Source of the DNA: Bigelowiella natans CCMP2755
Lineage: Eukaryota > Protista > Cercozoa
DNA: 64,000 nucleotides
Direction: 5' to 3'
NCBI GenBank assembly: GCA_000320545.1
Contig: ADNK01001329.1
Location: 1 to 64,000, forward strand
Both the position numbers and the translations under genes were made by a program. The first letter of the stretch is position 1. Each line of letters starts with the position of its first letter. Shown here piece by piece: positions 6,030 through 40,040 of this stretch. The notes under the pieces are model-generated. The model saw nothing but the letters and a program-made list of their open reading frames with translations. It was not told where the DNA came from and did no database searches.

Positions 6030-6104
<75 letters not shown>

Positions 6105-9369: not shown

Positions 9370-10065
9370 GCAAAGCACATGTGCTTGTCAGCTAGCTAGA
9401 AGAGCACAGCAGAACGTGCTGCTGCCATGGGCTGGCGGCTGCATGACTCAGGACTGCACTGGCGGTTGCATGACTAGCTAGCTAGCTGGCGGGTGACGTG
9501 CGGCTAGTTGTCAAGATCAGCATGTGGACAATGACAATTTTTGGGAGAAAAACAAAAAAAAGTCAGGAATTGTTCCAGAATGCTGAATGAGCGATGCGGC
9601 AACCATGTGCATTGATTGTCAATTGGAGTTGCATTGAGCTAGCACGCTGGCATGTTGACACAATCAATCAATGAATTTGAACTTGCATCGCATCACAGGC
9701 CCACAACACTCGCTACGTCATCGCAACATTGAGATGACGCACCAAAAAAGTCGAGACAGGGCTAGGGGGGGCTAGCTAGCTAGCTAGCTAGCCCCCCATC
9801 TCGACTTTCCACATCAAGCTCGTTGTTCGAACTGATGGCGTTTCGAGTGCCATTGACAGGGCTCCCAGTGCGATGCAGACTTGGACGCGTGCTTTTGCAG
9901 CCAAGCGCACACGCAAGACACTTGCAGTGCACGAAGTGCAGTGCCTCGAACTAGCTTCAGTGAGGTCCAACTGACCAGCCTAGTCAAAACAGAAGGAATT
10001 CAAGAATGGCATTCTGGCCATTGTGAAGCGGCATGAATGGCAGCAATGTGGCGTGAACGCAAAGC
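9370..10065. other. TpA-depleted intergenic island 1
   Basis: About 16 TpA in ~700 bp, of which 15 are in CTAG and 1 in CTAC. Rich in TG/CA; CpG retained. Confidence 0.85.
9747..9808. repeat. Inverted repeat/hairpin with a perfect 32-bp palindromic core G6(CTAG)5C6
   Basis: aaagtcgaga...gggggg-ctagctagctagctagctag-cccccc-a-tctcgacttt; core at 9766-9797. Confidence 0.9.
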
Positions 10066-10410
10066 ATCTACTCTGAGTAGGAATTTCCTGAAGGCTACAA
10101 CGGACGGGTCGTCCGAGGGGGCACCAACCAAGACTGCAGTCTGAATGAATTGATGAATGAATTGAGCTTGAGTGTCCCTCAATCCAAGATTTCCCGCTTT
10201 GTCGCAGTTGTAAATTCCCATTGTTTTCTCTTGGAATTTGGTTCAGTTTCGCAGTTATGCCTCTGTAACGGGATTCTTCTCCGGTGAGTACTGCAGCTGG
10301 GGCGTTGAATGTCAGCAACCTCATAACAGCTCCTTGAGTAGCTTAGATGCTCTGCACTGCCTCAGCCTCATGAGTCTTCATCCCTTGTCTTGAAGGAGTT
10401 GCTGTAATGA

Positions 10411-12905
10411 ATGCAGGGGATGAGCATCCTACGGGAGATAAAGGTAACTTCAATGCGTCTTCCACTTGCTGGCCTTACTGATTTTCCTTCGTTGTTTGGT
10501 GTACCAGCAGACGATGGCAAGAAAGGATCCGCTGAAACAGTTGGAAACCAGAAGAAGAAGAAGAAGGAGACAACTTCGAGCCAATCAAATAGTCCAGTTT
10601 CAGGAAGTTTGAATCCACGAACCGTCCAAGTCGATGCAAAGTCACTCTCTTCTGCTGCGTCTTCAAAAAATCAAGCTTCAGATGCAGGGACGATGAGTGA
10701 TCTTCAAAAAGATATGCTGTCGTCACAAAATCCGTCAAGTAAGAGCAGGAGGACCAAAATATCCGGTTCCAATCTCTCTCCTCTCGACAAGTTTGTATCT
10801 CAGAAGGCCACAGACCGAAAAGATTTGGAAGGGAAAATTAATAAAAAGCTAAAAGACTTATCAGCTGTAGTAACACCAAGCATGGAAGAAGTGAAAGATG
10901 AGAAGTCAATAGACAATTTTAATCTTCAACCACCAGTCCTCATGGCATCCGCGTCAACAGGTATTCTGAGGCGCAGAAGGAGTAATGATCCGCCAGCAAT
11001 GGTTGGCTCAGTCCCGATTAACTCACTAATGCCGCCATCATTAGAGTATTCCCAATCAATCAACATTGAGGTAAGGAGGCGGAAGGGCTGGTCTGTGGAG
11101 AGAGAGAAAGCGAAGAGAGCTATAAGTCGAACACCCAGGAGCCCACTCGAATTGAAACATTCGCTCGAAGTTGAGTCGTGGACAAAAAGGCACAACATTA
11201 AGGATGGAGAGGCGTTGGACAGGTTTCTAAAAGTATTGATCGAAATGGAAGGTGTCGGCTCCAACAAAGGGAGGATCCGCTCCAAAAAAGCGTCGCCGCG
11301 CAAGCGCTTCAATTCCGTTCCCGACCAATTGAAAGATGTAGCACGGGGATTAGTGGATGATGGCCGTCCCCCACGACATGGCAGCGTAGACTTGAAATAC
11401 GAGAGCCAAGATGCTTCTCTTCCACCAGGCACAGAGACTACTGCTTCTACAGGATATTGTACAGAAGATGATTTTGAGCTAATCAACGCGGAACCGACGT
11501 TCCGTTGGCTGAGAAAGGTACGAGCAAAACCATCTACTGCAGATGAAAAGATGCGCCGTGCTATAGCTTATGTCAGAGACGCGCTATACTCGAGAGGGCA
11601 CAAATATAAGGAAGCTTACTCGGACAGTCAGGACGAGTTCACTCAACGTGTTTTGCGTATGAAACAATCAATTTGGTATCGGATGTTCCTTCAGGGAACT
11701 GTTGTCCTTCACATGGTTCTCATGTTAATAGAGCCTTCATGCGACCAACACATTGAAAACTCAACTCTTATTGCATTGGCTGTACTGGATACTATGTGTG
11801 TGACGATATACATAGCCCATATTGTGGTGGAATCTGCTGCAATTGGGATATGCGGCGTAGTTGGAAGTGGAAAGCGGCTCCCTGCTCTCTTCATTGTAGC
11901 CTGTCTGGCTGCAGACACAATTCAGAGTCTTTTAACGATATCTCGGTCCGATGGTACGGTGCCATTTCGATGGACAATGCCAATGCGGCCACTCTTATTA
12001 ATATCATGGAGGAGGGATTTATTTAGGGTGACAGTAACCGTGTTCTCGACTCTGGGAAACCTGGCAGGTCTCAGTGCAGTGGCGGCCTTGGTAATTATAT
12101 TTTACGCGTTCCTCGGAGTGAGACTATTTTCTGGATTATATCCGAAGAACTGGGAGGCTGGAGCAGACTTCGATTCTTTCGAACGTGCATGTATCTCTTT
12201 GTTCGTTTTACTTACGACAGAGAACTACCCAAACTGTCTCTACCCAGCGCTCAATTACAACCAGTGGTCTGTTGTCTACTTTTGGTCGTACTTTTCGATC
12301 ATGGTGCTTCTGATCATGTCAGCTGTGATTGGCGTTTTCATAGACTCATATCGAGAGACCATTTCAACCGCAGCGGTCATTGAAAGAAAGAAACAAATGA
12401 AAACATGTCTGGAGGCTTTTTACTTGTTGTCTGAGCCTGTAGTGGTATTAGATCAGAACCACAAGGGAGACGTAAGGACACAGAATATCATGGCGGTGAG
12501 ACGTAGCTGCGTGAAAGAGCTTGCCGAGGGGGTGGTTGATGAGAAACACAATTTTCAAATCCGAACTCTTTTGGATCTATGCTGTGATATATCCAATCCT
12601 GATGAAGCTGATAAGGTGAACGATATGCATGCTAGTGATGAGCAGTTCGTTAAGTTCTGCCGACACCTGGGCGCCCTATCAAAGAAAACGAGAGCAACAA
12701 CGTTACCAGGAGAAAATACTGTACAAGAGTCCAAGGGTGAAGCAGCCGTCAGTCAGGGAAGACTCATCCCCTTTTTGCGGAGATTATCTTCGCAACATCT
12801 CGTTGAATGGGAATCTTGCGAGTGCTGTGAGGACTACGATTGTAGTTGTGTCTCCAGATTGGCTGATTGGGTAGTTAAACCAAGTCGATGCGGAATAGTA
12901 CTACA

Positions 12906-12962
<57 letters not shown>

Positions 12963-14868
12963 AGAGGAAGGAGACGTGTAAAAGTTGCATGTACCTCGAT
13001 CTCACAAGACTATGCTTGGTGTCTGTCTTCCTTGGATACTACTCTGTTGTTGTTGTTATTCAAAGCGAGGGTTTCACATTATCAATATGATAGTGATATG
13101 CTGCAACGTATTATTCGTCGCCGTGTATAGAGAAGACCTCAAGCCGTCTCTCCCCAACAGCATGAGGTAGCTATTTGAACGGTATATCTTCTGTTTTTTA
13201 GCGGTATCTTGAGGTCATTTATTTGTTCTATTTGTCTCAATATTCTCAGATTTACAAATTGCGCGTTCGTGGCTTTTGGGATATTCTTCGTCATCATTAT
13301 GATGCTAGGGGAACAAAATGTAGATTTATCGACCAACGATGTCCATAACGTCAATTAGCAATATTATTGAAAGGGTGTTTTGTGTGTTCATTTCCAGATC
13401 AAAAAGCACGCATTTGATGCTGTACTAGTCGGCACATGTGCAATTCTCCAATCGGTGGTGATTACTCTCGATGCAAGAGGTCAAAACTTCTCTTACTTCC
13501 AAGAATAGCTTTCAGAATTTAACTTTGGTCCCACTACCGCAGGATACTATAGCGAACAATGGGAAAGCTGTGTTCATTTTTTAATGGCTTTCCGGTTACT
13601 TACATTGCCTGCAATTAAAAGTAAAAATCAAATAATGTTCCAAATATGAGTGATTCCCCTTCTGATTCGTGAATTGTGTGTTTGGGATCTACGTCCATGT
13701 CCGTTCTCAGCATGGCTGTACAGTCTGTACCAATTGAACAAAATGTTACTCAACACGTACTGGGCTATCATCTTCAACCTCATCCTTCTTATCACTCTCA
13801 TCTCTTACAGGTGTGCTCTAACGTTTCCGCAATAATATGTAAACTTTTTCCCCTTAATTTGTTGAGAAGGGACACGTGAAGAAATGCTCTTGTATTTTTT
13901 CTTAGTTTTGCATCGATCGGAAATCTGGCGTTTTGTGGGAAGTTAGACGGGGACCCCGATTACATAGATTCTGAAGCTACATTTGACACACTCACAAGGT
14001 CATAATAAGTCAATTGGCTATAACGTCAGTGATATGAGAGATTTCTTGCTGATCATTGTAAAGGAGCTCATCTCATTCGCATTGCAACATCTAAGCTACT
14101 TACCTGATTTCAGATCGATGGTGAGCATGTTTCAAATCTTCTCTACAAACAATTGGAACGACGTCATGTTCGGAGTTGCGAATAAGACTAATCTATGGTT
14201 GGGACAATCGATTATCTTGTTTTCTAATGAATGTATTTTTAAAATTACAGAATGGTTTTGTCATATAGGTCAACGGTATTCTTCATTACATATTTCATAG
14301 CCATAAACATTGTGGTGGTGAATCTCTTTGTCGCTTTGATATGCGACATGATATCAGCTCACTGGCGCCGGGTAACATATTATTATAATTTAATAATTTT
14401 CGTATATTGTTCCATTATTTCCTTTCTTCAGTTTGCTCCCAGATCGTTCGTATACATCATAATGATTTCTACACAGCAATGATTTCACTTTTCCATTCAG
14501 GGTAACGAGGGCGAGGAAAGTCGGCAAGATCTGATGGAAAAGCTAAGGCAAACTCAACGGGGGCAGGTCTCAGAAATATCTCTTGAAATGCCATTAAAAG
14601 ATTTTGACACCTGGCTGTTTTGTAAGGGATTTTTCGGTGGATTTGCACAAGTAGCAAAAGTTCTGATGGCTGAGAATGAGGTTCCAGAGTCTTAAAATTT
14701 GCATGGTTCAAATTATAACTATACATCTTTTTTTGGTGGCAGGAGAAGCAACCTTCTGGATTGACTTCAGCAGCTCCACCGCCACTCTCTGCAATGAAAA
14801 GACGATCACTAGTTAATTTGTTTGACAATCAAAATGAGGCTAATTTATCCACCAGGATTTCAACGTGA
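10411..14868 (+). CDS. Two-pore cation channel (TPC) paralogue A with a long low-complexity N-terminus
   Basis: The 856-aa ORF carries a 6TM domain I (S4-like MRPLLLISWRR; pore FVLLTTENYPNCLYP). Downstream small exons give the domain II pore MFQIFSTNNWNDVM and S6 FFITYFIAINIVVVNLFVALI. Probable stop TGA at 14866-14868. Confidence 0.85.
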
Positions 14869-15299
14869 ATCAAACAAACATAACCCAGGGATGAAATTCG
14901 AAGCATTCTATGTGCACTTTTGTTGCGTTTATTAGCGATTCGATAGCAAAATGTTCACATCGAATGCATGCAGCCAGCCATTGGTCAACGGCAGATGAAG
15001 GCCGAACACAATTTTGCTGCGCACATGGTCATGGCGACAGCCTACACAGGTAGCGCCACAGACTCGTCACTGCAGGCAGAGCATCAGTGTCTCACAGCGC
15101 ATGCACTAGTGCACATAGCTAGATGGTCGCGCCATGGCAGCCACGTTGCCTGCACTCAGTTGTTAGCTAACAACTACCATGTTACAGGCTGCGGCGGGTG
15201 CAGACCTAGCTGCCTGCATGACTACGACATCGCATCAGTGAAATCGATCAGCAATCACATGCACTAGAACTGGAGCTGCATAGTTGGGCACAAGTGATT

Positions 15300-16690
15300 T
15301 TTTTTGTTTGGAAATGTTTTTGTTTTTCCTGCACGCGCAAGTGTTCGATTTGAACAAACAATGCCCACACGTCGCGAAACTGGTGCTCGATTCGTTCAAA
15401 CAATGTTCGAACTCAGAGAAATGTCGTGAGGTTGCGCTGAGATCACGTGTTGGTGCACGTAGCACCATGTGTGCACGTGACATGCCCTTCGCAACGGCAA
15501 CGATCCAAGTCCATGAAACCACGGTGGCGTCAACATGCAGGTGACACGTTGGCTGCACATGGTCAAAAGCATCGTGTCAAGAGATGCGCACGCTGATCGA
15601 TCACAAGTCCGTCAAACCCGGTGACGACGGGGTTGTGAACAGTGCAGCGCTTTGCGACGCGCTTTGAAGCAGCAGGCAGTTGCAGTTAGTCAAAGAAAAG
15701 TCATCAGAACTTGTCCGATGGCCAAACCTGAAAAAATGACCGAAATGTTGACCAAAATGTCCATTTTCAAGGCCTCAAAGTGTGAAAATTCACACCCGCG
15801 TTGTGCAGCGGATGCACGCTGCGCGTTTGTTCTCTGCCACATTTTGAATGCTTTTGCGTGTGCGTTTGACCAAGTGTGACATGCACGAAAAATTTCAAAG
15901 AAATGCGAGCAAATCCAATGTCCATTGCATCACATGACGCGCTTGGTCGCGCGCAAAAGCTTCCAAATGCACATTCTGGCGATTGGTTACAGGTTTGACG
16001 GACTTGTGATGGAAGTGAGCGACTCTAGCGACTGCAAGCAGATGAGCCGTTCAAGCATGCTAGCATGCGACAGCAGAGGACGCGAAGCAGCATCAAGTCA
16101 GTTTTTGTGGCAGCAAGTGACGCACTTGTGTGTGTCAGGCGTGTGCCTGACACCAGCTTGCATGTGTGCGGCAGCACAAACAGAGCCAGCACATTCAAAT
16201 GATGATTTCGAAGTGGCCCGCTAGCCCGCCAAGCAGAGCGGTGAGTGTGGCATCTCACTTGCACACGTTTGCGTGAATGAAATCAATGTTTTCAATCATC
16301 ATCAGGTTTTTTGTCTAGTTTGTCCACTCTCTCGTGCCACCTGGCAATTGTGGCAGCGCCGGTTTTGCGCTCGCATCAATTTCGCTCGAATGTTTGCAAA
16401 CACTTTCCTGTGGAATTGTTTGCAAACAATTTGAAACGTTTTCGAATGCGTCACTGAAACAACTGACCAATCCCCTTCACCTTTGATTGGGGTTGCACGT
16501 GCAGGCTTTCATCGTTTGTGCAGCCTTGCATGCTTGTGCGCAACAAGTGCTTTGATCTTGCATGCTCGCATCGCGCGCTGCACTTGCACTTTGTCGTGCT
16601 CTGCATGCATGCATGTGCACACACGTGTGCATGACGCCGCTCATCACAAATGCAGAAGCAAGAGCTCGCACTGCGATGCTGTGCGCAAAG
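15300..16690. other. TpA-depleted intergenic island 2 (possibly a decayed repeat or non-autonomous element)
   Basis: About 7 TpA in ~1.39 kb (4 CTAG, GTAG, TTAG, TTAC). Partially depleted, CTAG-rich shoulders at ~14950-15300 and ~16690-17250. Confidence 0.9.
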
Positions 16691-17280
16691 CTACTATGCT
16701 AGCATGCTACATCAGGATGACCATTGAAAAGATTTAATCACTTCATTACATCATCCGTCTCACATATCGCTATCCAGATGTGCTTAGCTTGCTGTGACGC
16801 TTGGCGAGGCACAACATTGGCAGCCTAATCTAGTAATAATGTGCACATGCATGCGCACAGCTACGCTAGCGCATTAAGCAGATGTAGCATTGCATGATGA
16901 AGCTAAAAGGCGGTGCGAGCTAAAGTATAGCATGACCGTAGCACATCTCGCACCGCTCCACGTAGCACGTTTTGCTCATTTGTTTCAAAATATCTGGTCA
17001 ATCAAAGCTAAAGACATGCTTCCAAAAAAGTGGAAACTTAAATGCCCGTCTCAACCAACATTAGGGTTGTACACGCATAACCCATGATATAATCCAACAT
17101 GGATGCTATTCTGAGCTATGTACACAGCAACTTTGTCACCCATGTATCCATCCATGCACACGACTGCTTAGCACACTTGGACTTTGTTCACTGCGATTGA
17201 TTATCAATTCGACGAGTTGCATGTGTCGTCGTTAGAGGTAAGAAGCTTGACATGTCAAGTCTGTGCTGTTACTATCCTTC

Positions 17281-19134
17281 CTAGCACGGTCTCTCCCTGA
17301 TAACATCACGAAATGTGGAAAAATTTACCAAACCCCGATTGAATTAGGTGTTTCTAATATATGTATAAACATGCATCAACATGACAATCCTGGTACTATT
17401 ACGATGAAAACGATGTGCTACCAACGTTCTTGTTTATACGATGCTGTATTGCTTATTGCTGCTGCTGCGTAGTAGTAGTATCAAGAGATTCTGTTGTAGT
17501 ATCACTTTGATGATGCTCACGTGCAACAAACAGCAGCACCGACAAGAACGACAATGCTACTACTACCGTTGTTACAACAATATTTTCTTACTTACTACCA
17601 GCTTGTTGCCCCTGAAAGAGTGTTGACATAGTACGTAGTTCCTGAACCCTGATGATATTGATGATGATGATGATGATCATCATGATGATGATGATCATCA
17701 TCATGGACGATGGCCACGATTACACAAATACACCAATGCTTTACATAAATCATCAAACACCCGGGAAATATGATGGGAAACAGTCGCCAAGATTCGTGCT
17801 ACATATCAGCTAGGCGTATTTCCTCATCGATGAATTCGTGCTACATATCAGCTAGGCGTGCTACATATCAGCTAGGCGTATTTCCTCATCGATGTTCATC
17901 ATAAAGCCTCATCATCATCATCATCAATGACACCTAGTCCCCCTCCCCCCCCCCCCCTCTCCTCCTCCTCCTCCTCCTCCTATACCTCGTCCATTCTCTC
18001 CACCCAGTGTGGTGGTAGGGATCCTGCAATCTGTGATATACGGGTAATGAATTAGCACCAAGAGCATCGACTTTCAGGAAGTTAATTTAACATTCAAATA
18101 TGTCCTCCTCCTCCTCCTCCACCACCACCTCCTCCTCCTATCTATGACTTACCACCACCACCATCACAATCACCACAACCACAACCTGGGCTTTGGCTTG
18201 GGATACGACCGCATCTTTTACGGGATTCTAGAGGTTGATCACAGCATGATGAGGACGACGGACGATTATGATGATTATGATATAACCCGAACTCCAGGAT
18301 TCGATAGAGGTGGTTTGGCGAAACTGGACGCAACTACCATATTCATGACAACCGCCAGCAGGACAGCACAAGGTCCCGTCGTTATTTGTATCAACACCAT
18401 CATTATCAACACCATCATGAGAATGGGAAACACTGATGAAGCACGCACCTACTTCCCCATCGTTGTCGTCATCACTATCACCATCTCATCTCACAAAACT
18501 ACTCTCCTCCTCCTCCTCCTCCTCCTCCTCCTCCTTCTCTTACTACTACTACTACTACTACTAGTGCTGCCACCTGGGTCGAGGAGAGGTTCTTTGGAAT
18601 CTGCTTGACCTGCTATATTGTCCGTCTTAGTTTCGTACTTCCCTGCAGCGTGGTTCTCCTTCAACAACAGAAAGAAAATAGTCGTTCACACCATGATAAT
18701 TAGACAGCAGATAGCAGCAAAGGGAGGATGATGATGAGCTTAAGACACACCACCACCACCACCACAATAACAACAGCAATTACTGATATTAATACAAAAA
18801 ATACTGCCAATACCACCTGCTCTCCCTCGTACAATTTCGCGCATGTGCATGCCAAGATCAGGTAAAAAGCGCCCTAAGCAAAGGAGACGCCGTCATTTTC
18901 CCAATTCTTAAATGCAGAAAAGCCAGCAACTTGATCAATCATCGTCGTCATTTTAGATAATCATCGTCATTACATCATCATCATCATCATCTCATCATCA
19001 TTGTCGTCACCCCTACCGGGCCAAATGCGAGGATCATGATTATATATCCCCACCAGGGCCATCCTACGCAACACAGCCAATAATTACGTGGGAAAATAAC
19101 AACGTCATGGTCTTCCTCCTCCTCTCCTTATGTT

Positions 19135-19170
<36 letters not shown>

Positions 19171-19401
19171 CGAAAGCTCTCATTCCGACAAATATATAGG
19201 ATAGACCCAATCCCATTGGCGTCTTCAAGAATGAGAAATAATACAGAAACCTGAATGCAATGTTACCAATTATGATGAGCAGGGGATCATCATCACGCAT
19301 ACGAGTAGAGAGAGAAGAAAATGGTGAAATCATTCACAACATATATCGTACATCTAAGTAAAGCACGCGCACGCGCGCGGGAGAGAGATAGATAGAGAGA
19401 T

Positions 19402-19446
<45 letters not shown>

Positions 19447-20129
19447 ACTTAATATGTGATAATAATTTAGTGTCGCTATATCTTTACATTCCAATTCGAA
19501 TTTCTGCTGCGAGGAATAGAGCCCCTAAGAATGATAGACAGTGAAATGATTGAAAAAGAATAAGTTGAGCTTTAACCGTAAACTTCACTCGTTTATACCG
19601 AAGATGATATAGAAGAGGCTATCTGTCAGCTGCCGCAAACCAGGTGAACCGACAAGCCCAATAGCACCAACAATTATCAAGGATGTCGCGCATAGGGCCC
19701 CTTCAATAGTACACACAAGCATCGTAGGAAAGACAGCAAGTAATAACGGCGGTGGGTGATCATATGATATTTTGTGGGAGATTTTGGGAGGGGAGATGGA
19801 CTGATGGCATTCTTCTAGCCATCAATCGAAATAAATATGATCTGGTTCTAATTAATGGCCATCATCACTGCGTACCGATAATTCGTACAGCAATGATGCT
19901 TTTTTTTGCGCACCTGGAGAACACAATTGTTGGATGAGTGACTGTGTGTGACATTGTTTTGATCGACGAAAGAACGATTTTCTCCACATTCATAAGTTCA
20001 TTGTAGCGGCATTTTCTATCTTTCAATCAGCTTATTAAATATGCAAAAATATGATTGTTAATATGATCTTATAACTTCTTATAACTTTATATAAGTACTT
20101 GCTGCTGCCATCGCCGTCATGGCTTCCAT
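17281..20129 (-). CDS. COPI-associated/Tvp15-like multi-pass membrane protein with a C-terminal WW domain
   Basis: Spliced exons give SLIIVGAIGLVG...LFYIIFGALFLAAEIRIG-FLYYFSFLKTPMGLGLSYIFVG (COPI_assoc-like FxFL..GxG..YIFVG). The C-terminus LPPHWVERMDE/GSGTTYYVNTLSGATSW/ERPC* matches the WW consensus. Stop at 17281-17283; start approximate. Confidence 0.7.
17793..17894. repeat. Intronic compound tandem repeat (A-B-A-A-B)
   Basis: A=cgtgctacatatcagctagg, B=cgtatttcctcatcgatg. Confidence 0.85.
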
Positions 20130-20859
20130 CGGTAACCTCCTGATATTCTCTTCTCGCGCTCATATCTGGTCCCCCACTTTTCAAGGCCAATTTCTTGCTC
20201 TAAATAGTTGGAAGCATGTAAAGGAGGATGGAAGCTAACAATCGTATGTAACACCAAACGAAGGAAAGGCTGACCGTTCCGAAATCGTATCTTTGGCCGC
20301 TACGATTCGATATTAAGGGATAAAAGTTGCTTCCTTAACTGCACAACTACTGCGTATCTTTAGAGAATAACGCTTTTGATATTGTCTCAAGTGAATATTG
20401 CAGGTAAAAAGTAAACATTTTTGGGAGAAGTTTTATACTTTTTTTGGCTAACTTGTGATTGGTTTTTAGGGTAGGGTAATTTGGTTGGTAGTTTTTGTCG
20501 GAAGTCGCAAATCCTTGAATGGACTCAACGAAATGTAGATGATAGACGATGGGAAACTACTCCAGCTGTTTAGGATAAATAGTGCATAAATTATTTCCAG
20601 AATTATGGGTGAAATTTTAATGTAAATCAGTACGTAAAATATTGTCCGTAAGCCTACATCTGATTATTGTATGTGCAAAATAGGATCTAATTTTAAATAT
20701 GATTAATATACTAACAACACTAATTGCAAAAGCTTCAGAAAATCTCGATAACATCGTAGAAGTTTTGATCTACTCGTTTGCTGGCCCATCCCCCACCCAC
20801 CTGAGCCTCAGATAACTGTATCGGGGGGGACGGACGAAAAGGAGAACCAGCTTACGGAA

Positions 20860-21147
20860 ATGATGGCTACCCAAACTTCTCGTATGGCAAAATTCTAGTG
20901 AGGCATAATATTATCCGGCAGGTCCTCACCGTCAGAGCACAACAGCATGCAAGAGCACAAGCGCAAAGACATTCTGGATTTGGTGGGCAGAAGGACAAAA
21001 TGAGGCGGGGGCTGGTCCAAGCTCTGTGGCTCATCATACTCTTCATGTATTATCGTCGCATTTTACACCTCCTCGAGAAACACTTCATGTATTATCGTCG
21101 CATTTTACACATCCTCGAGAAACACTCGTTGGAGAAAAGAAAGAATG

Positions 21148-21181
<34 letters not shown>

Positions 21182-22199: not shown

Positions 22200-22231
<32 letters not shown>

Positions 22232-24803: not shown

Positions 24804-24845
<42 letters not shown>

Positions 24846-24926
24846 GGGGGGATCGGAGAGAAGGCATCACGTACTTATTTTATTATTAATAAGGTGCTAC
24901 ACGTACATCATACGCACAAATCCCAT

Positions 24927-25399: not shown

Positions 25400-25740
25400 G
25401 ATATTACCCTGATTGTCCTGCGAGAGATGATCTTCGGGGCACAACGTGAAAGGGAGGACCACATTTTTTTAAATATGTTGTTCTAGGAAGGCTCCACGCT
25501 GTGAGAGGGTGACTGTTGGGTTGGATCTACGCACGCACGAGGAAGCTATAGCAGACGTCCCTGCAAGCCAGCACTTTGGAAATTAGAAGATTTACTATCA
25601 CTCGCTGTTTTCCTGTAATTATGTTGTCGTAGAGGTTTAATTACAGGTAAATCGGAATCATCCCCAGTTTACTGACTGAATCCCCGTCACTGCCAGTTGG
25701 TTGACGGGGATTTGCGATAACTCATTCATCAACAAGCGCG

Positions 25741-27690: not shown

Positions 27691-28835
27691 TTAGTCTACG
27701 TTGCTCGGGACGAGAGCTCTCGGTGTTACATCCATATGAGCTCTAGAGCTACCCAGAATGCAGGTATCGACTTCATTGGGCATGATCGCAAACAGAAAAG
27801 TAATATTTCTTTCTTTTGGAACCAAGTATCCACTGATCCGAGCAAGGAAAAGTCGTGATAAACTCTCGCTCAAGCAAGCTAGTGTCACGATGATACTGCT
27901 TTTCAAAATGACGGACATCACCAACCTAATCACTGAATTAGGTGGAGACTAACAACGTGCAACTCGACTAATGCCATCAATGGCGACCGCTTGTATCACT
28001 ACATGAATAATACTTAGCATGTTAAACACATGCTAGCAAATCTGCGATTCTGGATTGAGCACACAATAAACAACGACGAAAGAGCTGTATATCGACGAGA
28101 TCAATGCTCCGACTGCCAATATCCAGTTTAAACCGTACTAAACAATATCAAAAGCACCAGCAATAGCAGCAGCAGCAGCAACAAACCCAAATGTTGGCAC
28201 CAAATGCTATATTCTCATGCAGATGATGCAAATTACCTCTAGTTTCCCAACTCTTACATGTGCTATGTAACAGAGTGGTGGCAGCACGAATGACACAATA
28301 CCTAACATTTTATGACTGTTTCAAAACACATTGGCATGTGCGAGTGAGACTGAGGGATTTGGGAACCGTTGCTGAAAGCCCCGACAAACGATGTCACAAT
28401 CTCAAATGAAGGAATCATGATCGCGAAGAAAACCTGCAACGCAATAAAATCCCTGAATCAAGCTGCTGTCCAATGAATTAACACTGCTATTTACCGTGAA
28501 CATGACGAGGAAGACCCTGACGAGGAAGCTCCACACCACATGATTCCTTACTGTACCATGCATGTTGATATTCAGGTAACGTAAAGAGCTCAAATGACAG
28601 GTGACCTGCATGTACAAAATCACGTACTCTAGATCACCACCACCACCACCACCACCACCTTTTAGAAGATCCTCAAAGGTAACCGACGCTGGTAGCAAGG
28701 TGATGGGATACTGCACCTGTTTGTTGATCATGAGTAAGGGTAATAAATGATAATAAATAGCCATGCCCAAAAATAGGAAAACAATTGAATCGAATATCAC
28801 GCTCTACCTACCACTATATTGCATGTTTGCAGTTG

Positions 28836-28877
<42 letters not shown>

Positions 28878-28996
28878 GCGTGTATATGTCTATCTCTCAA
28901 ATTTTAGTAGAAACGACTGTTCGTATTGTAATCTCTTCTTTTGTTTAAAGTATTCCTTACAAGAAGGCAAACGCAGATGCAGATCTGACAAATATA

Positions 28997-29036
<40 letters not shown>

Positions 29037-29123
29037 ACTCGATCATGATTAGGCAGACACAATACATTGCAAAATGGAAAATTCCAAACGAATTTGAAAG
29101 AAGAATAGACGGGTTATCTTAAC

Positions 29124-29162
<39 letters not shown>

Positions 29163-30002
29163 TTATAAACCAAAAGGCAAGAAGAAACTACCACCTTTAC
29201 AAATATTACAAAAGAAGAAGCTCCAAGATTCTCGAAAATGATCTCATTAGTATCATCTCCAAAGAACATATAGCAGAGAGCACCTGAAAAATAGACACAA
29301 TGGCTCATGATGGCGCATGATTTACATCATCGTTCCCACTATGATATACACGTTTTTAATTACTCCACAGCATCTATCATTATCATTCATCCTTCTGCCA
29401 ATATTAGCACATATTTGATACTATTCAGAACAAGAAAATGACCCATCACAACGCTACCGCTACACTACTACTACTGCTACTGCTACTGCTATAACTAGTC
29501 CATCTCGGTTGCTACTATCATACTAAGCATCAGCCTTGTTATCATTACCAAAAGAAAGGTACAAGGTTGAGATAAACAGGAAGGCCCAGTTCAATATTGA
29601 CAAGAACTCCTCACGATTGTTCATATCTACAAACGACAACGGAAGTTGCAGCAAACGGATCAGCTGATCAGATGATCAGATGTTGTTGTTGTTGTTGTTG
29701 TCGTTGATGATGATGATGATGATGATGATGATAGGGTAACGAGACAGTACTCTATCGTAACAAATCTGGTAAAAGATAATCTCGACATATTGACTAAAAG
29801 GAAATTGAAACAGATGAAGCGCCAGCAGATACTACATCCTTCCCCCCCCCCCTTGCACCACTCTCTTCCATGATATCTATCAATTTGATTAAGGTTCCTC
29901 CATCAAAAGCCATAGTAAGGCATGCATGTAATACACGAGGACGGTCATGTGAGAGAGGGAGGACATTATATAGCATGATTTAATGAGGATTCAAATGAGT
30001 GT

Positions 30003-30039
<37 letters not shown>

Positions 30040-30528
30040 CGCGCGCGCGCGAGCGCGTAATACCTTGTTCTATGGACACCACCTCACAGTGCGCCGTAAA
30101 AGTATAAACCTGGTTCATATTACAACAATTCAAAAAAAAAGAAAGAAGAGGAAGAAGATGATGCTTTCAGATTAAAAAAATGTATAAATAACTTGCACAG
30201 GAGACTACTACCCCTATAGTAACAAGTGGTGACGGAGTATTCACTCGTTTCGAGTATCTACTCAAAGAGCACACGATGAGCATAGATAGTAAAGAAAATG
30301 ATATCACATACTCACTATCATGATCACCATCATGCATGCATGCATACCCCAATGCCAAAGAAGATTGGTAATCCCAAATAGCGAAATTGAGTATACGTCT
30401 CGAGACTTCTTGGTGGAGACTCACTAAAGCCGTACCTATTTGGGGGACAGCAGCAGCAGCAGCAGCACGTTAGGGATTTGGAACCGACGAGGTCGCTTAA
30501 TTTACCCCTTCCCCGCTGCCTCTGTCTG

Positions 30529-30578
<50 letters not shown>

Positions 30579-31126
30579 TCTCCCTCTCCCTCTCTATGTA
30601 TGTGAGTGTCTATACCAGAAGACGGTTGAAACAGCAAGTACAAGGGCAGCATTACCTAGATAGAGAGACCACAATCATACGACATGCACTCTCAAATAAT
30701 GGATGTAGCTTGTGATGATCAAATGGTGAGGACTCGGTTGCTACCAATCTCAGGGGCTATTGCCACCTACACTGTAATCTACATTGCATTCATACTACAT
30801 GTAGGCGATGATAATAATAAGTCTCATGATTGATTTCCTCACTAACTGATAACCAAGGTGAGATGTCGGCGCAAATAAAGACGCATCCCTGTTGATGTGG
30901 GTTATATTACGATATTCATCGTGTGAGCAATCGTCTGCAACGAGTAAGCGGGTCATTAGAGTACATGGCGTGTGTACAGTACTTGTGCGCGTGTGCATGC
31001 GTGCTGCCGTACTTTATAAGAGCAAGGATGATAAGAATCGGCACCAGTCCCAGTGTTATAATGCTTCCTGATGCTCCTAGTAAATGATATAAAGTTCATC
31101 TATTATCTCTAATGATGAGATCCAAC

Positions 31127-31161
<35 letters not shown>

Positions 31162-32821
31162 TAGTAGCCGCAGCAGGGGCTTACGAAGCCGAATAGCAGC
31201 AGTGATAACGGTAGCTATACTCTTTGTTCTATAAACAGGGGAGGGAATATAACCTGTGACGTCTGCCATGTTTTCTCCAATGAACACCAGAAAAGAGACA
31301 CAAGCTCCAAGCTGAATAAGTAACAAACCATTTGTTGCACGCACGCACGTAGTGGGACATAACGCATTTTGGTGTTAGGGTTCTTTTTCAGTGCTACGAT
31401 CAACAATTTAGTGCCCTGCTGCACTTCATCATGCAGACACATATCAGTGAAAATAATTATATTTGTATTCAATGATATGACGCACGATAAGGATGATAAC
31501 TACTACCTGCGTACTGATGGCAGCAAAAGCCGAAATACCCTCTCCAGCAGCACCAAACTAATAGCAGAGTAACCAATCAGCAAATATGCAGAATTCATTG
31601 ATACTTGTTTTGTGACGATATACTCACAGTGAGGCTGCTAAGCTCCTGATACTCAATTGCGCCGTCGGGGGGCCCCCTGAATGAAGAGAAAGTGGTAGAT
31701 AGACACATTCAAATTCAAAATAGAAAGTAAACTGTCGGCATGCATCAAGTAGAAGCGATCGATCATCAACAAACATTACCACCCCCCTTGTTGAATTCAT
31801 ATGTTCATGCGGATGAGGGGGTCGGTGAAAAGGAGACACGTTGATTTGATTTTTAGGTATGTCTTACTTCCCCTTCTTGCGTAGCTCCCGAATCGTCATG
31901 ATAATGATGCGATGTGAGTCTAGAGGGAGGGCGAAATGGAAATTTCCGATGGTTATATTGTAATGATTTGTGGACAAAGAAGCTCGGTCTACTCACATAA
32001 GCTCACGAATGCAAAGATGACGATCAAAATGGTTCCCAACGCGAGGCCCTATGTAAATAACCGCAAGTGAAGCCAAAAAGAGTTCCACGGTAAGCGAATA
32101 GTTTTTTTATGAAGTAGCGGCCCCCCAGGAGGACACCAACCAATTCAAGTGTAAATATTCGTCGTGTTGTCTTTCCGAATTTTGGTACAACGGCATGATG
32201 TTAGTAGTAACAGTAGCAGCAGCAACGACAGCGAACCAGAGCAAAAATAGCACTGGATTTAGTAGAGTAGTATAATGGGGTGGTAGCAAGTAGTATCAAT
32301 ACCGTCTCTTTGAATGCAACGGGCAGGGCCAGTATCCCAGACCCAACGACGCTCTATAAAGCGGTAGTAGCACAGCTCAACCTCAGTGTTGTTGATGCAG
32401 CAGCAGCAGCAACCACCATAAACACGTGCTGCTAATATGCTATCACTGTCATGCAGGAAATGCCCCATTTCGAAAATATTGGTGCCAGATGGCTGACGCT
32501 ATCAAGATGTCACAGATGCGATGTACCTTGACCACTGTGGAGAAACCTCCCCACCAGGAGGCGCCTTTCCTGGAAAATCTTACCATGGGTTCTTCACCCG
32601 CCGATAGAGCTCCATATTCCATTTCTTGTACGTCTCCCGATGGCATTCTCCTGAAGAAATAATCGCGAGTGGGGGTAGGGGGGGAGTGCTGCTTCTCTTG
32701 TTCCGGTCTGTTTAAAGGTCAGGCCGATGGTTTGTTCCGTTTTATCTCGATTCCTGTGAATATGCTTGTCGCACATAAAAAAACAAATGCGAAAATATGA
32801 CCATCGGAATCCAGCCTCCAT
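27691..32821 (-). CDS. Amino-acid transporter (AAAP/SLC36-like, Aa_trans family), many exons; ends approximate
   Basis: KGASWWGGFSTVVK; LLIQLGACVSFLVFIGENM; CYMFFGDDTNEIIFENLG; QYPITLLPA; FVTSFVGAFS..VLPPLCYI. Confidence 0.8.
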
Positions 32822-32999
32822 TCTTCTCGGAAGCCAGGAGGAGCGTCCCTCTCCCGCTAACTATCAGGATTCTTCTCCCCGGAGGAACTTCCTAGGATAG
32901 AGCAGAGCCAGCAGGAAAACGAGTGCGGAGCTGTTTTGTAATGGCCGACGCTGCGCATGTAATATATTAGAGCTTAAATAGTGAATCGTCAATAACGTT

Positions 33000-33679
33000 A
33001 TGGTTGACCAGTGCTGGGGGGTGTGGTTCGCATTTTGAGAAGTAAAAAGTTTATTCTTCCACTGGAAAAGACTCGAGAATGAAATCTGAGCATCGTGGCC
33101 TTCCATGTAGGCTGACAATAAAGAAAGCGCGAGTGCCTCCATCGCAAGGCTCAGCGAGGACAAGAAGGGTGAGTTCGTTTTTCACTTGAAACAACCTGAC
33201 CCAAGATAGGAGACGCCTGATTACATTCACAAAATATAATACCCACGTTTTCCTTCATTGATGTTTTATATATCCTTTTGTGAATAAAGTCACGGTAAAG
33301 CTAAGAGCGGTTGGAGGTGACACTCCAATATTAAAAAGGAAGAAGTTCAAAGTGAAGGGATCGCACCAGTTTTCTCACATCGTTGTCTTTCTCCGAAAAT
33401 CACTGAAAATTAAGCAAACGGATTCTCTGGTACATAAAAGATAAAGAAATTTGGCTTTGGGTGCACTTTATTTACACTGCAACTAAATTTAGTTCCTCTA
33501 CTGTGGGCAAGCATTCTCGCCTTCTCCTGAAGAAATCATTGGCGATTTGTTCAACGTATGTAAGAAGTTTCATTTCCATATATAGAAAGCTAATGCATAT
33601 TATGTTTATCTATACTCAGTGTTTTCAACTTAATAATGAGCTGGAAGTAAGTTATTGCACAACAAATTGCTGGGGTTGA
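33000..33679 (+). CDS. ATG12: Autophagy ubiquitin-like protein Atg12 (alternative ATG at 32941)
   Basis: Spliced KKV/TVKLRAVGGDTPILKRKKFKV...IVVFLRKSL..DSL/FLYCGQAFSPSPEEIIGDLFN/CFQLNNELEVSYCTTNCWG*, with the C-terminal Gly retained. Confidence 0.92.
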
Positions 33680-34669
33680 CATCGATTCCTCTACTATTAA
33701 ATAAGAAGTATTGACCTCCCTCGCTTCGCAACAAATAATATGATATGAAAAAATGGTTCCAATCGATTATCAGTTAAAGTGCTTTAGACTTTTACTCGAA
33801 TCACCATTTTATTACAATAATAATGTACATAAATTATTGAGTTATTACTGTCAACTGCATCGAATACATTACTAATGAACAGAAGGTTTATATATAGCAT
33901 AATAATTTGCTTCTGGATAAGCGTGCGGAATGTGTGCACAGTAGTTAGCTGCGAATTGCATTATTTATTCTACTAGACAGCTATGTATCGCTATGCCATA
34001 GCATGCATTGCACGATGTATCGATGTCCTCCATGCTAGCATGCTAGCATGCTCATGCACACGACTCTAGCTATACATACGTACTATGTACACATAGGCAA
34101 TAATGCTACAACAAGCATTGCCTCTAATAAGTGCTTATGGCGGTCGCTCTGAACAGCGTGGCTTTAGCCGCAGCATGTACTTCCATGGATTTGACTATTA
34201 CATTGCATGCTCTACTATATAGCTACGCTAGTGCTTGCTTAACTTTGGAACGCAGCCAACTCTCATTTCAGCCAGCATGCGCAAGCAGGCAATCTAGCCA
34301 TGTAACAGTGTAGCTGTTCGTATAATTCGTATATGTGCGTCTGGAGACGTAGTCGTCTATCTCTAAATCTATGTGTGCATCTACAGGCATCATCCAGCAT
34401 CACCAAGTTGCTCGGTTATTATTCTGCGATTACACAACTACGACGTGCTCTGACATAACGATCACAACGAACTTGTTCTAGTGTCACATAGTCAGGCAGT
34501 CAGGCTTTGCCGTGCCTCTACGTGAGCAAAGCTGCGTGCAAGCGACTTCGTACACGACATCAAGGTGCATGCTCTGGTCACTCTATCGGAAAAGCGGTAG
34601 AATATGAAGTAAATCAACCATAGGATGCCGCACGCATTCACAAGGTGTTTCTTGCATTGCTTTTCATTT

Positions 34670-35579
34670 GCTCAAGCAGGATTTATACTAGCAGACATTG
34701 AAAGAACTCGAGGAATAGCAGCCAAGCGTAGTCGCTCATGCCACTCGAGCTATGCAAAGCTCGGTTCTTGGGGGTGGCCTTCGCTAAAAAATATATTGAT
34801 GCCACACCAAACCACAATCGAGCAGGAGTACTTGGTACAGATTCTTACAGAAACTCTTGAGATCCTGCGGAGTGTGATTGCGATTGCGAAGTAGAACCAC
34901 ATAGAGATGATGCGTTGTTCTTTTCTAATGTTGGTAGAATTCAATTTCTCAAAGGAGAGCCGCGGAATCACGTCTGTATCAGTGCTTGGATGAGGTCCAA
35001 AACCTCTACAGCGTCCCTCTGGATACTAAAAACAGACATGAATCAAACTCAGGGTGATATTACGAATACTTCGTGGAATTGCACGGAGGCATCAATAATC
35101 TTACGGCTGCTTGCTGTATCCGGCGAGCGATGGCGAGAAATGGCTATGTCAACTATTTATTAATTAATTTGAACTTTCCCAACCTGGCATTCTTCGTAGA
35201 AAGAGCTTTTATATTTGGTTTTGCAGCAGCGAACCATCTTTACAAAAAAGTAAATGAATGAATCGCAACTTTGTGACCGGTATCAAAATTTCTTACTTCA
35301 AGCACTCCTTGCATCGCGTCCGCCGTTCCTCAAATTGGGGATTCACCAAACTCTGCATTTACACATCGGTTCAGATTATAGAAAATGCGCTTGGTGGTAG
35401 CTAATATGAAAAGGAATAGTAACTACCGATTTTCCTGTTGTCAATAATGTTGATTTAATCACTGGACTAAAACTCTTCAGAATGAAACGTAGATAGCTGA
35501 AGTCCCAAACAAAACAATAAGAATTAGGAAGGTACGATGCACGTGCATACATTTCAAGCATTTAAACATGCTCTCTCTC

Positions 35580-35627
<48 letters not shown>

Positions 35628-37558
35628 CAACCTGAGGGAGGTTTTGAGGTATCCTTCAAAAGGCATGGTAAGAAGGGACGTTAGAATAGGAAGCAATTCT
35701 CTGCTCATTTCTAGATTCAAGGCCGATTGCATCTGAAGAGATAATTCACAAATTACAGAATTTTTGGTGGACTCGATTGCTTTTATCTACCTGCTTTTCT
35801 GCATTCTTGAGAAAATCAGCCTGTACGCTTCTGTTATTCATGTCAATCTGATGTATATTTCGGACATCGCAATAAGTGCCGGTTTAAAGTAGATGCGTGT
35901 ATGCTCGTACCAATTTGTCAAGGGCGCCCTTCACGTCTCCCTTCACCCAATAACTTCGAACAAGTCGCAATTGATGAGTCCTACACACCAAAAACGCATT
36001 ATAACTGTTTTATTCAGCATAGCAAGAAAACACACTAGTAGTCAATTGTACGGCCAACCTTTCAATGAGTATGCCTTTGAACTTCACATGGTCTTTACTC
36101 AGGTCAGTTAACACCTTCATCACAACAATTTTTGCGGAGTATATTTTGGTGACTGTTACACAATATGCAGCACAAACGTCGTTCTACCTTATTTGTATCG
36201 AGCGTTTGCCGACAAGATAAGAAAGCACTCATATCCAGCCCTAAATAAAATAACTCTGAATGTTTGCTTCTTCTCTCGGGCTCTAGTTCTTTGGTACCGA
36301 TGGGCTTTTCAGATTTGTGCGGGATGACAACGGATTTCTTTTCTTTTACTTCCTGTGAGACTGCGGGGGTACTCTTTCGCCCGCATTAAAACAAATCGTT
36401 ATTATTAGAATTGCTACTCAACGAACCACAAGGCTCATGGTATATTACCTTTGTTGCGCTAACTGAGGTGCCTTTTATTGACATTTTCCTGCAAATTTAG
36501 CAGATTACCCCTCATCGAAACTAGATTATAGAGCGGTAACAAAGGGAGTAGGGGGAGGCGGGGAAATGATACTGCAACATATTTGTACCCTAAATCTTGC
36601 TCAATATGTCCGCTCGAAGATGAGCCTCCGTGTACTTTTGGTGATACATATCTTCCTCCCACTCTATGTGCAGCCCGAAACGGTTCCATCTAATGATATT
36701 TAAAGTACCACGCTGTAAGCAAACCTTTTGCAGTAGAACGTTTTCTTTTTTTTTTTACTTTGTACAATCTGACATCGGTAGTTTGAACCAAGTTCTCCTT
36801 GAACCCGACAGTGTATAGTACATCTGAAACAAATAGAAAATCCTCGTAAATATGAAAAAGATTAGAATATGAAAAAGATAAGGAACGTATTTGGTACCCG
36901 AGCTTGTAACGGTCATATCAGCGACATTCTGCCATTCAATTTCAACATGATCGTGCATTTTCATAGGATTCCATCCCCACGTCTTCAATCCCGAGGACGA
37001 GGCGGACAACAGTGTCTTCCCATCCTACGTGATAAAGTATACTCAGGAATGAAAGCAAAGTCAACGTTGAGCAAATATTTTACCTTGTGGAAAGCTATTG
37101 AGTGGATACGGGTTGGATTGACGGTTGTGCGTTCAAGAATGTCGAAGTTCTCCAGATCGAAAAAACTAATCAATTAACATTATCAGTGATATACCAAATA
37201 TCCAACTTCTCTGTAACTGGTCACCGAATGGTTTTTTTCTCCGTTGCACATGCCATAGTCTGCTCTGATGGGCAAAGAGCCATGGAAGTGACCCCTGATC
37301 CCATCTTCCATTGCGATAACACACTGCCCTTGGCGAGATCCCAGACCTTGACGTATCCCCCGGCGTCTCCTGAAATAATCCACTTTCCATCTGGACTATG
37401 TTTCAGAGCTGTCACGGGATCTTCATGCCCCTACACGATATGGACAACACACACTCTTATTTAAGCATATATGAGTTCAGAGACGTAAACCAACACACAA
37501 CCTTCAAAGTCATATAAGAGTTTCGCTTGCGTACGTCCCACACCTGCGATATGTGTCA

Positions 37559-37611
<53 letters not shown>

Positions 37612-38437
37612 TTTTTACAATCCAAAACAGGTTCGACATAAGAATTCCCACCTTAATATTCGTATCTACAGATGCGCTCGAAATTTTCGTCTCTGTGGGA
37701 TGAAAATCTATACAGGATATACTGGCTCTGTGCTCTGCAAATGTCGCCATAATTTTCTCTTTGGCAAGATCCCAAAGTCGGAGGGTTCCACTTCGAGAGC
37801 CAGACGCAATCGTTCTCTTCTTAGTATCAAAACCAGAGCCAAATTTCACAGAATCAATTGGCTTAGACCCTCCGACCAGCGCTTTGATCGGCTTTTGGTC
37901 ATTGTGGATTATCTTCCAAATATGGATCCGGCCATCGGATGCTAAAATGTAATTTGACAGGGTTCATCAATACAAACCAATAACGTATTTCGGAAATTAA
38001 ACGGACCCCCTGTTGCATAAACGAGATTATCAATGCAAGCGCAGTTGATTTTGGAGTTGTGCGCAAAGAACTCTGCATGTTTGTCGACGCGAGACATTGC
38101 CACTTCACTCTTTGCCCTCCTGTGTAATCAAATAGTATCTTGAGTCACAGAGAAGATCAAGTGAGCATAAATAGAAACTAGTGTTCCTTAGATCAGATAT
38201 ATGTACTTGCTGATGACTGAGAGTTCAGGCGTTCTTTGGACTCAGAAATAGATTACGAAATTCAAATCCGAGTTCTTGGATGGGGAGGCACAAGAAGTTG
38301 TTTTAAGGAGCAGCCACCACCTAAGCCATTGGGCAGGATATGGGGTGTGGAACGGTTAACTGCGAGGTACAAACTAAGTTATCAGCAGTGCTTGCTGGAG
38401 GACAAAATAGCATCCTTTTTTACCCTACGTCTTCCAT
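34670..38437 (-). CDS. KATNB1: Katanin p80 WD40 subunit; ends approximate
   Basis: EFFAHNSKINC; IASGSRSGTLRLWDLAKEKIMATFAEHRASISCIDFHP; GHEDPVTALKHSPDGKWIISG; GLKTWGWNP..HDHVEIEW; then a low-complexity linker and a helical C-terminal region. Confidence 0.85.
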
Positions 38438-38604
38438 GAATCCCATCACATAATTAATTCCGCCGGGAGTTGTCCTTTGATTAAAAAAAATAAATGCGCG
38501 GGAACTTTCTCTGGAAGCTGTAAATCAGCCAACAAACCAAACATGTCTGTGACATCACGGACCAAAACTTGATCAAACAACAACAAGAACAACAGTTCCT
38601 TCTT

Positions 38605-40040
38605 AGCAGACCACACTCAGTTTTCAGCTCGAGGCACCACGTTTCGTGCTTTGCAAGTGTGTCATGCACTTTGGCAATGCAGTTGATCACAAAGTTTCTT
38701 TCTTTCTCTCTTTCAGCAGTGCCAGTGGCACACTTCACTCACTCATTCATTCACTCATTCGTTCATTCATTCAGCTCGTTGGAGTGTCGATCATGCACGA
38801 ACACGATTCTTGAAGGAAGTTTGTTGGGCGCACGTGTGTGACACTCAGCGTGCGCACCTTGCACGCCACAAGTCTTGAGGTCTTTTCCCGTCGCAGACTT
38901 TGTTGATTGTGCGTTGGAACACTCAACGTTGTGGAGGGCAGACAAGTTGGCAGGTGGTCCTTTCAACTGCAACGCAAAACCACTTCGTTCGCTCGTGAAC
39001 TCGTGAACGAACGTGGGGTTCGTTCACGTGAAAGTGGCAATTCCTTTCACTCGTGCAACAGGCGCCAGTCTCAGTGCGATCCTGATTCGATTCGTCCGCC
39101 GGGTCCTCTTTGGAGCCGTTGACCATGGCCTTTGACGCAAAGGTCGTCACTTTTTCGGTTTGGTTCGCTGGTTCGCCCTTTTGAGAGTGCTGAAGTCATC
39201 GCACTCAGCGATGCAGACTAGCAGAAGCCAGAAGCCGTGCAACCTAGCTTCAAACAATTCTTTCTTTCTTTTTTTCTTTCTTCCTTTCTTCCAAGGTGAG
39301 TCTTTGTTCTTCTTCTTCAACTGCGCTGCTAGACTGGCCAGTCCAGCAGTGCACCATTGCGAATTGCTTCGTTCACTCGTTCGTGGGAAACCAGACCAGT
39401 GAAAACAAGCTGGCAGGCCAACAGTGAGGACGTCACAGGTCACATGCACGAACGGCATCACAACGGTGATGGCGTTGCAAGGCCATGAGAGTGCGGCTCA
39501 TTGCACACGACCCCAAGACCGACTGGACAACCCCAGAACCGTTCACATTCAACTTGTCTGCCAGACTGGTCCAGCACAGTGGCTGCCGGAACAACGTTCT
39601 CGCACGGTTGCACAGCGGCGTCACGGCGAACTTCAAAGCGCTTTGGTGCATTTGCAAGCCAACGTGCTGGCGTGCGACGACTCTCAGAACTGGCCGACCA
39701 TGCGACTGTCTGACGACCGCGCTCATCGCTGAACAGTGCTGGAGTGCGCATGGCGGTGTCCGCAAGCTAGCAAGAGTTGAGAGAAGCCGCGTGTGCTTTG
39801 CTTTTCCAAGTTTTTCCTGCCAAAGCTAAGGGGAACAAGTTTGTGTTGCACGACCTGCCCAGCTGCTAGCTAGTCGTGGAGCGAGTGCAGGTGCGCACCA
39901 GTGCGTGCACGACAGTGCCGCATGGTTTTGCTTTGGTGCTGCTGGGCGCATGCATGTGTGCGCTCTGCGAGTGGCGCGGTGCGATGCGCAACAGATGTGA
40001 TGCGGTGATGCATGACGTGATGACAGCTAGCGCAGATGGA
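38605..40040. other. TpA-depleted intergenic island 3, containing coding-like remnants (possible decayed mobile or foreign element)
   Basis: About 8 TpA in ~1.43 kb (7 CTAG, 1 CTAA), and none between ~38606 and 39217. ORFs within the island lack Tyr and are enriched in Cys/His. Confidence 0.9.

Follow-up and report, generated by a model that had tools for sequence, protein, structure and literature searches.

Deamination of 5-methylcytosine removes CpG, and repeat-induced point mutation (RIP) of fungi, a RID-dependent process that changes CpA into TpA, creates TpA. In the cercozoan Bigelowiella natans, a hypermutation of TpA to TpG or CpA has been described in mutation-accumulation lines (Mettrop et al., 2026; 10.64898/2026.01.13.699255; hereafter the preprint). 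In those lines, 231 of the 302 nuclear mutations lay inside one integrated region of a nucleocytoplasmic large DNA virus (NCLDV) and one virophage region, and 230 of these 231 were A>G or T>C changes, nearly all at TpA. The rate in the viral regions was about 4-6e-7 per site per generation, approximately 1000 times that of the rest of the genome, and the hypermutation was on in some of the lines only. The preprint also maps TpA-depleted clusters genome-wide by their signature, in which TpA is low while CpA+TpG is high (rho TpA <= 0.43 with rho CpA+TpG >= 1.52 in three consecutive 1-kb windows, with a cluster size of at least 3 kb), ties this signature to viral and transposon sequences, reads the targets as foreign DNA and puts forward an ADAT-type deaminase, the ADAT2/ADAT3 pair. 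Its text does not treat CTAG, the tetranucleotide or flanking context, miniature inverted-repeat transposable elements (MITEs) or the edges of the domains. No further work on the subject was found in the literature searched. Here we analyse three intergenic islands purged of TpA in B. natans CCMP2755. They lie in a stretch of 64,000 nucleotides (contig ADNK01001329.1, positions 1 to 64,000 of the forward strand), hereafter named the window, and are very probably products of this same regional hypermutation.

The three islands hold 31 TpA in total, 26 of them in CTAG, where base composition predicts about 6 TpA per 100 bp, which reproduces exactly the counts of a first-pass annotation made from the letters alone. 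Sixteen TpA (15 in CTAG) were found at 9370-10065, seven (four in CTAG) at 15300-16690 and eight (seven in CTAG) at 38605-40040. The corresponding observed/expected (o/e) ratios for TpA were 0.40, 0.08 and 0.11, against 0.79 for the whole window, in which the 5th percentile of 300-bp windows was 0.35; no island appeared when the window was shuffled. The abundance of TG/CA, TGCA and CATG that had been noted together with retained CpG was also borne out, with a CA/TG o/e of 1.3-1.7, a density of TGCA and CATG approximately 2-3 times that of the window, and a normal CpG o/e (0.66-1.04). Neither ApT, ApA nor TpT was depleted in the islands; hence, the effect is specific for TpA and is not a general shift in G+C. 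G+C-biased gene conversion was considered as a candidate and rejected on the same dinucleotides. The pure (TA)n tracts at 596-631, 6033-6072 and 37560-37609 were confirmed, and all six tracts of at least 8 units in the window lie outside the islands.

The edges of the islands are sharp, with 0-1 TA outside CTAG per 100 bp inside and 5-11 outside in 100-bp profiles. When the borders were set by counts of non-CTAG TA, island 1 spanned positions 9400-10000, in the spacer upstream of an ion-channel open reading frame (ORF), with one non-CTAG TA in 600 bp, a rho TpA of 0.40 and a rho CpA+TpG of 1.57-1.63. Island 2 (15290-16685) occupies the spacer downstream of the same ORF, with three non-CTAG TA in 1.4 kb and rho values of 0.08 and 1.71; to the right of position 16690 TA jumps to 6-11 per 100 bp. 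Island 3 (38510-40300) lies in a spacer bounded by the RPS6 gene (3' end) and a WD40 gene (5' side), with rho TpA of 0.11-0.17 and rho CpA+TpG of 1.51-1.54, and it carries 0-1 non-CTAG TA per 100 bp over 1.8 kb against 6-8 on both sides. Hence, the three islands proposed in the first-pass annotation are real, although the third is somewhat longer than the 38605-40040 assigned to it there.

In several respects the islands resemble the regions described in the preprint: the spectrum is exclusively TpA>TpG/CpA, the change is regionally restricted and low TpA is accompanied by high CpA+TpG. The genome examined here also agrees with the one reported. In the 91.4-Mb assembly, G+C was 43-45% and TpA represented 5.8-6.4% of the dinucleotides (44.9% and 6.0% in the preprint), and the surroundings of the single NCLDV capsid locus showed 3.4% TpA and a rho of 0.50 (3.3% and 0.45 in the preprint). 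Taken island by island, the rho values of TpA and of CpA+TpG were 0.40 and 1.63, 0.08 and 1.71, and 0.11 and 1.51, in agreement with the window thresholds of the preprint (the last pair being borderline). Its cluster rule applied to the window gave one qualifying 1-kb window and no cluster, the size of at least 3 kb not being attained. Unlike the clusters of the preprint, the islands are spacers of 0.6-1.8 kb between ordinary genes, mostly single-copy and devoid of homology to viral or transposon proteins. In 264 kb of unselected sequence, 12 TpA-purged patches of 0.3-1.55 kb were found, which represent 3-6% of the DNA. The idea that the islands reflect an undescribed system does not hold, since the preprint reports the process and also suggests adenine deamination of the ADAT type. 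TpA hypermutation in B. natans is therefore already known and its discovery belongs to the preprint; what the window adds (small non-viral targets, no repeat trigger, a context rule and the turnover of CTAG) is useful but modest.

The direction and locality of the change were read from a 407-bp MITE located within island 2 (15602-16008, plus strand), which has 17-bp terminal inverted repeats (CACAAGTCCGTCAAACC) and target duplications of 2-3 bp. More than 40 copies of this element with 92-98% identity are present in the genome, from 173 first-look candidates. When 30 copies were aligned, each of five sites proved to be occupied by TA, TG or CA and never by CG. Since only TA is one step away from both TG and CA, TA is the ancestral state at these five sites, two of which are retained as TA in the copy of island 2. 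Fifteen of the 30 copies had no TA at the five sites and carried 11 different combinations of TG and CA, and therefore the losses of TA were independent and took place after insertion. The number of CpG remained steady at about 27 per copy. How many TA sites a copy had kept correlated with the TpA o/e in its flanking 300-bp stretches (Spearman 0.79, p = 3e-7) and was unrelated to its overall identity. In thirteen copies with TA-poor flanks, 2 of 65 TA sites were left and the other positions of the element had changed by 1.5%; in ten copies in normal DNA, 39 of 50 were left and the other positions had changed by 1.1%. From these copies, the rate of change at TpA is estimated to be at least about 100 times that of other sites per base, and to be so within the islands only. 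The alignment to genomic copies thus confirmed the direction TA>TG/CA, and the suggestion of a locus-targeted T:A>C:G change at TpA in non-genic DNA was upheld, because the three-state sites centre on TA and the loss follows the flanks and not the age of the copy. This comparison of sequences, in which the transposon copies act as clocks inside the genome, constitutes independent support for the hypermutation, of a kind unrelated to the experiment of the preprint.

Substitutions outside the five sites were also enriched in A>G and T>C, which accounted for 35 of 77 in the island copies versus 10 of 43 in the non-island copies. This excess may be due to off-target activity or to ancestral TA sites masked by the majority consensus.

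Two further places in the window look like conversions that occurred in place. A scrambled (TG|CA)11 tract with seven switches is present at positions 16602-16623 of island 2; it is the sole mixed TG/CA tract in the window, the 13 others being pure (TG)n or (CA)n, and we interpret it as a fossil (TA)n microsatellite whose units were converted one at a time. In island 1, an inverted repeat around (CTAG)5 spans positions 9747-9808, with the arms GTCGAGA-CA-GGG and, as reverse complement, GTCGAGA-TG-GGG. Apart from an extra CTAG in one arm, the arms differ at one dinucleotide, CA versus TG, as expected if a single ancestral TA had been resolved independently in each arm. No runs are seen in the alternation of TG and CA, and hence both strands are hit independently.

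The influence of the neighbouring bases was determined using the trinucleotides of the 226 events in Table S2 of the preprint (10.64898/2026.01.13.699255), which were tallied by hand. In 23 of the 226 events the mutated A was followed on its 3' side by G (A>G in TAG, or T>C in CTA), whereas this context represents about 21% of the TpA strand-sites, a share that was the same in a 322-kb sample and in 3.5 kb of the viral region. The relative rate of TAG/CTA is thus about 0.4 (p about 1e-5). The normalised rates according to the base located 3' of A were 1.85 for T, 1.17 for A, 0.75 for C and 0.46 for G. When summed over both strands, these rates predicted how well each of the nine NTAN words other than CTAG is retained over the long term in the islands (r = 0.86, p = 0.003; 322-kb sample). 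CTAG has the worst 3' neighbour, G, on both strands and therefore decays the slowest, with a predicted retention of about 0.37. An asymmetry on the reference strand was also visible in Table S2, with 4 A>G at TAG versus 19 T>C at CTA (p = 0.003), in that context only.

Slow decay does not account for the whole behaviour of CTAG, which is 2.3 times denser inside the islands than outside. Since a process that destroys TpA cannot raise the density of CTAG, this word must be replenished and not merely spared. In the 322-kb sample, 131 of the 995 CTAG (13%) were flanked by identical 4-mers on both sides, versus a median of 0.7% for other tetramers. One of these N4-CTAG-N4 structures, CATG-CTAG-CATG, is an 8-bp insertion located at 16056-16067, and others lie at 16217-16228, 39214-39225, 39763-39774 and 40126-40137, with 20 more in the window. 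The MITE alignment indicated that insertions of this kind arose after the insertion of the MITE in copies L038, L037 and L005. They resemble the traces left by an element that duplicates 4 bp of its target, and no description of them was found in the literature searched. The density of the insertions rises about 11-fold in the islands, where 54 N4-CTAG-N4 were found together with 16 N4-CTGG-N4 and 14 N4-CCAG-N4 (about 1.5 of each of the last two are expected by chance); in the background the respective numbers were 77, 6 and 2. The insertion sites of the islands thus comprise 54 that are intact and about 27 that have been converted, a retention of about 0.67. Hence, of the claim that the islands spare CTAG, the part that stands is that CTAG is the slowest context; it is not immune, because 30 island sites look converted to CTGG or CCAG, and insertions replenish it. 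CTAG is, in short, slow and replenished.

The alignments and counts show which way the change goes, that it is limited to TpA, that it depends on location and not on repetition, and how the contexts rank. A mechanism consistent with them would change the A of TpA into G on either strand, within sharply bounded spacer patches of 0.3-1.8 kb, so that the top strand would then read TG or CA, each site independently. TpA would change at least 100 times faster than other sites until TA is nearly gone, and the base 3' of A would tune this rate in the order T > A > C > G, with CTAG the slowest, while a separate process would re-supply CTAG by inserting this word along with a duplicate of the 4 bases next to it. 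The chemistry would most likely be the deamination of adenine to hypoxanthine by a polynucleotide adenosine deaminase; an A>G outcome with a preference for a 5' T fits editing of the TadA/ADAT/ADAR type, although T>C on the opposite strand would be read identically. The patches, for their part, would most likely be set by a chromatin or epigenetic state and not by sequence, an RNA-guided definition being another candidate.

Several points weigh against this reading. In the mutation-accumulation lines the hypermutation was almost exclusively confined to the viral inserts; on scaffolds free of viral ORFs, Table S2 also has a small number of TpA events (10.64898/2026.01.13.699255). Two of the MITE sites, both in TAG contexts, show opposite biases towards TG and CA. 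The normalisation of the contexts comes from just 3.5 kb of the viral region, and the tally of Table S2 was manual. An A>G change on one strand is indistinguishable from T>C on the other. Finally, the expansion of TadA/ADAT/ADAR-like deaminases that the first-pass annotation had suggested looking for did not appear. In a six-frame, exon-by-exon search of limited sensitivity, the genome contained six CDA-fold loci (PF00383/PF14437) and one ADAR/ADAT1-like A_deamin locus (PF02137, C2414:14438-15741), without lineage expansion, and all the loci found may be housekeeping enzymes.

Of the alternatives, the one that survives best retains the regional hypermutation and moves the lesion to thymine. 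If the T of the palindromic TpA were modified or oxidised (to a base of the hydroxymethyl- or formyl-uracil type, or by another two-strand mark similar to CpG methylation), it would pair wrongly with G, with T>C as the outcome. TpA is palindromic, both strands are hit about equally without strand-coordinated runs, and TG and CA alternate randomly both in the (TA)n fossil and within the MITE copies, all of which agree with such a lesion. The sharp edges of the domains and the switching on and off between lines (10.64898/2026.01.13.699255) also resemble an epigenetic mark. On the other hand, none of the enzymes that could be expected, which the first-pass annotation had also named, gave a match: TET/JBP (PF12851), MT-A70 (PF05063) and Dam (PF02086) were all silent in a six-frame search whose sensitivity is low in this intron-rich genome, PF12851 and PF05063 being silent in control genomes as well. 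We consider the thymine lesion unlikely, and adenine deamination the better explanation.

Much less credit is due to the proposal that the islands are foreign or repeat DNA, either TA-poor on arrival or mutated by a repeat-triggered mechanism similar to RIP. In its favour are the MITE in island 2, the dispersed repeat of about 95 bp at the start of island 3 and the association of the signature with viral and transposon sequences in the preprint (10.64898/2026.01.13.699255). Except for these two repeats, however, the islands are single-copy in the 91-Mb assembly, and eight ORFs in them gave no Pfam match at E < 0.01 (long ORFs are expected by chance here, because DNA free of TA lacks two of the three stop codons). 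An Rfam search of the window gave no match either. The unique parts, without genomic copies or Pfam matches, are compatible with degraded non-coding foreign DNA. Against an origin in TA-poor DNA, the fossils described above show change in place, and the MITE keeps its TA sites when it lies in normal DNA. A second family of repeats behaves in the same way. This is a 5.7-kb long terminal repeat (LTR) retrotransposon that encodes reverse transcriptase and RNase H between identical 326-bp LTRs (L048:1479-7193, equivalent to C2862:71479-77193, and C2862:142131-147846). At least 23 full-length copies with about 100% identity, from 507 first-look candidates, are present in the genome, and the TpA o/e of the element (1.13) indicates that the hypermutation has left this very recent burst untouched. 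Repetition is not the trigger of the hypermutation, because unique DNA is purged while the copies of the MITE and the LTR element outside the islands are untouched. The analogy with RIP drawn in the first-pass annotation therefore fails on its trigger, with single-copy DNA purged and both the MITE (more than 170 candidates) and the LTR family (at least 23 copies) untouched outside the islands. We regard this proposal as very improbable.

The dispersed repeat lies at positions 38620-38715, at the left end of island 3, and has more than 40 diverged genomic copies with 72-95% identity.

Equally improbable, and already close to refuted, is the removal of TA from spacers by selection (to keep UpA out of transcripts, or to escape transposases that target TA or a nuclease that cuts it), which agrees with the mild overall under-representation of TpA (o/e 0.79) and with the position of the islands next to gene ends, but would need to remove independently all five TA sites in 13 MITE copies with 1.5% neutral change, faces the same change measured as raw mutation in bottlenecked lines (10.64898/2026.01.13.699255), and leaves transposable elements denser, not rarer, in the islands.

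A further question is what marks the targets. With a confidence that we place a little short of even, what is targeted may be not foreign DNA as such but a state of the chromatin or of position, by which many small spacer patches with sharp bounds are marked; the same patches would serve as landing zones for mobile DNA, and the 3'-neighbour rule would leave CTAG behind. The MITE, the LTR elements (both copies in C2862 adjoin islands) and the CTAG insertions suggest that the islands are preferred landing zones for mobile DNA. A chromodomain, which would have been a possible hint of heterochromatin targeting, was looked for in the LTR retrotransposon and was not found.

The comparison with other mutators sets the process apart. 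Fungal RIP also leaves a heavy, dinucleotide-specific load of transitions in defined stretches and a skewed dinucleotide signature, but it makes TpA from CpA, whereas the process of B. natans destroys TpA; moreover, RIP is triggered by duplication, whereas the process of B. natans is not and has no known link to a sexual cycle. The decay of methylated CpG in vertebrates shares with the islands a palindromic dinucleotide that is hypermutable on both strands and gives TG and CA, and a mosaic of domains. It differs in that the source in the islands is TpA, G+C rises and no base modification is known; furthermore, the depleted state is the bulk of the genome for vertebrate CpG and a rare island for TpA in B. 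natans (3-6% of the sampled DNA). Hypermutation by APOBEC3 (on DNA) or ADAR (on RNA) also consists of clustered transitions with a neighbour preference, and the 5' U preference of ADAR matches that of the islands. Unlike these, the process described here acts on chromosomal DNA, gives A>G and not C>T, and hits both strands without coordinated runs. It is unusual for a eukaryote to rewrite chosen parts of its own chromosomes through A:T>G:C changes at a single dinucleotide, and such an organism may be a source of a natural DNA adenine editor. Because ordinary short spacers are among the targets, it may be a mistake to define the target as "foreign DNA", and the 3'-neighbour preference could serve as a fingerprint for testing and identifying candidate enzymes.

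The genes next to the islands are ordinary. The ion-channel gene between islands 1 and 2 (10411-12981, plus strand) is an ORF of 856 codons with an ion-transport domain (Pfam PF00520, E = 1.4e-20); searches for homologous proteins and for contigs encoding them gave no match to the 856-amino acid product. To the right of island 3, the last two exons of the gene for ribosomal protein S6e (40538-41307, minus strand) matched PF01092 exon by exon (profile positions 23-79 and 77-125, E = 2e-23 and 6e-18), and the stop codon is located about 240 bp from the right edge of the island. On its left, a WD40 exon (37559-37963, minus strand; PF00400, E = 1.7e-14) contains the intact (TA)25 at 37560-37609. 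The S6e and WD40 genes are, accordingly, on the same strand. Among 12 islands, the flanking genes were arranged head-to-tail in three (all three spacers of the window), convergent in three and possibly divergent in one of C2862, and ambiguous in the rest; these orientations derive from a crude hexamer coding score and give no verdict on whether islands mark the 3' ends of genes.

Several of the short insertions that arose de novo in the lines end in ACA (Table S2; 10.64898/2026.01.13.699255). One of them, TTACGCGCAACA (scaffold_8:334281), matches the final 12 bases of the LTR retrotransposon exactly. Short fragments of LTR ends therefore seem to have been inserted de novo.

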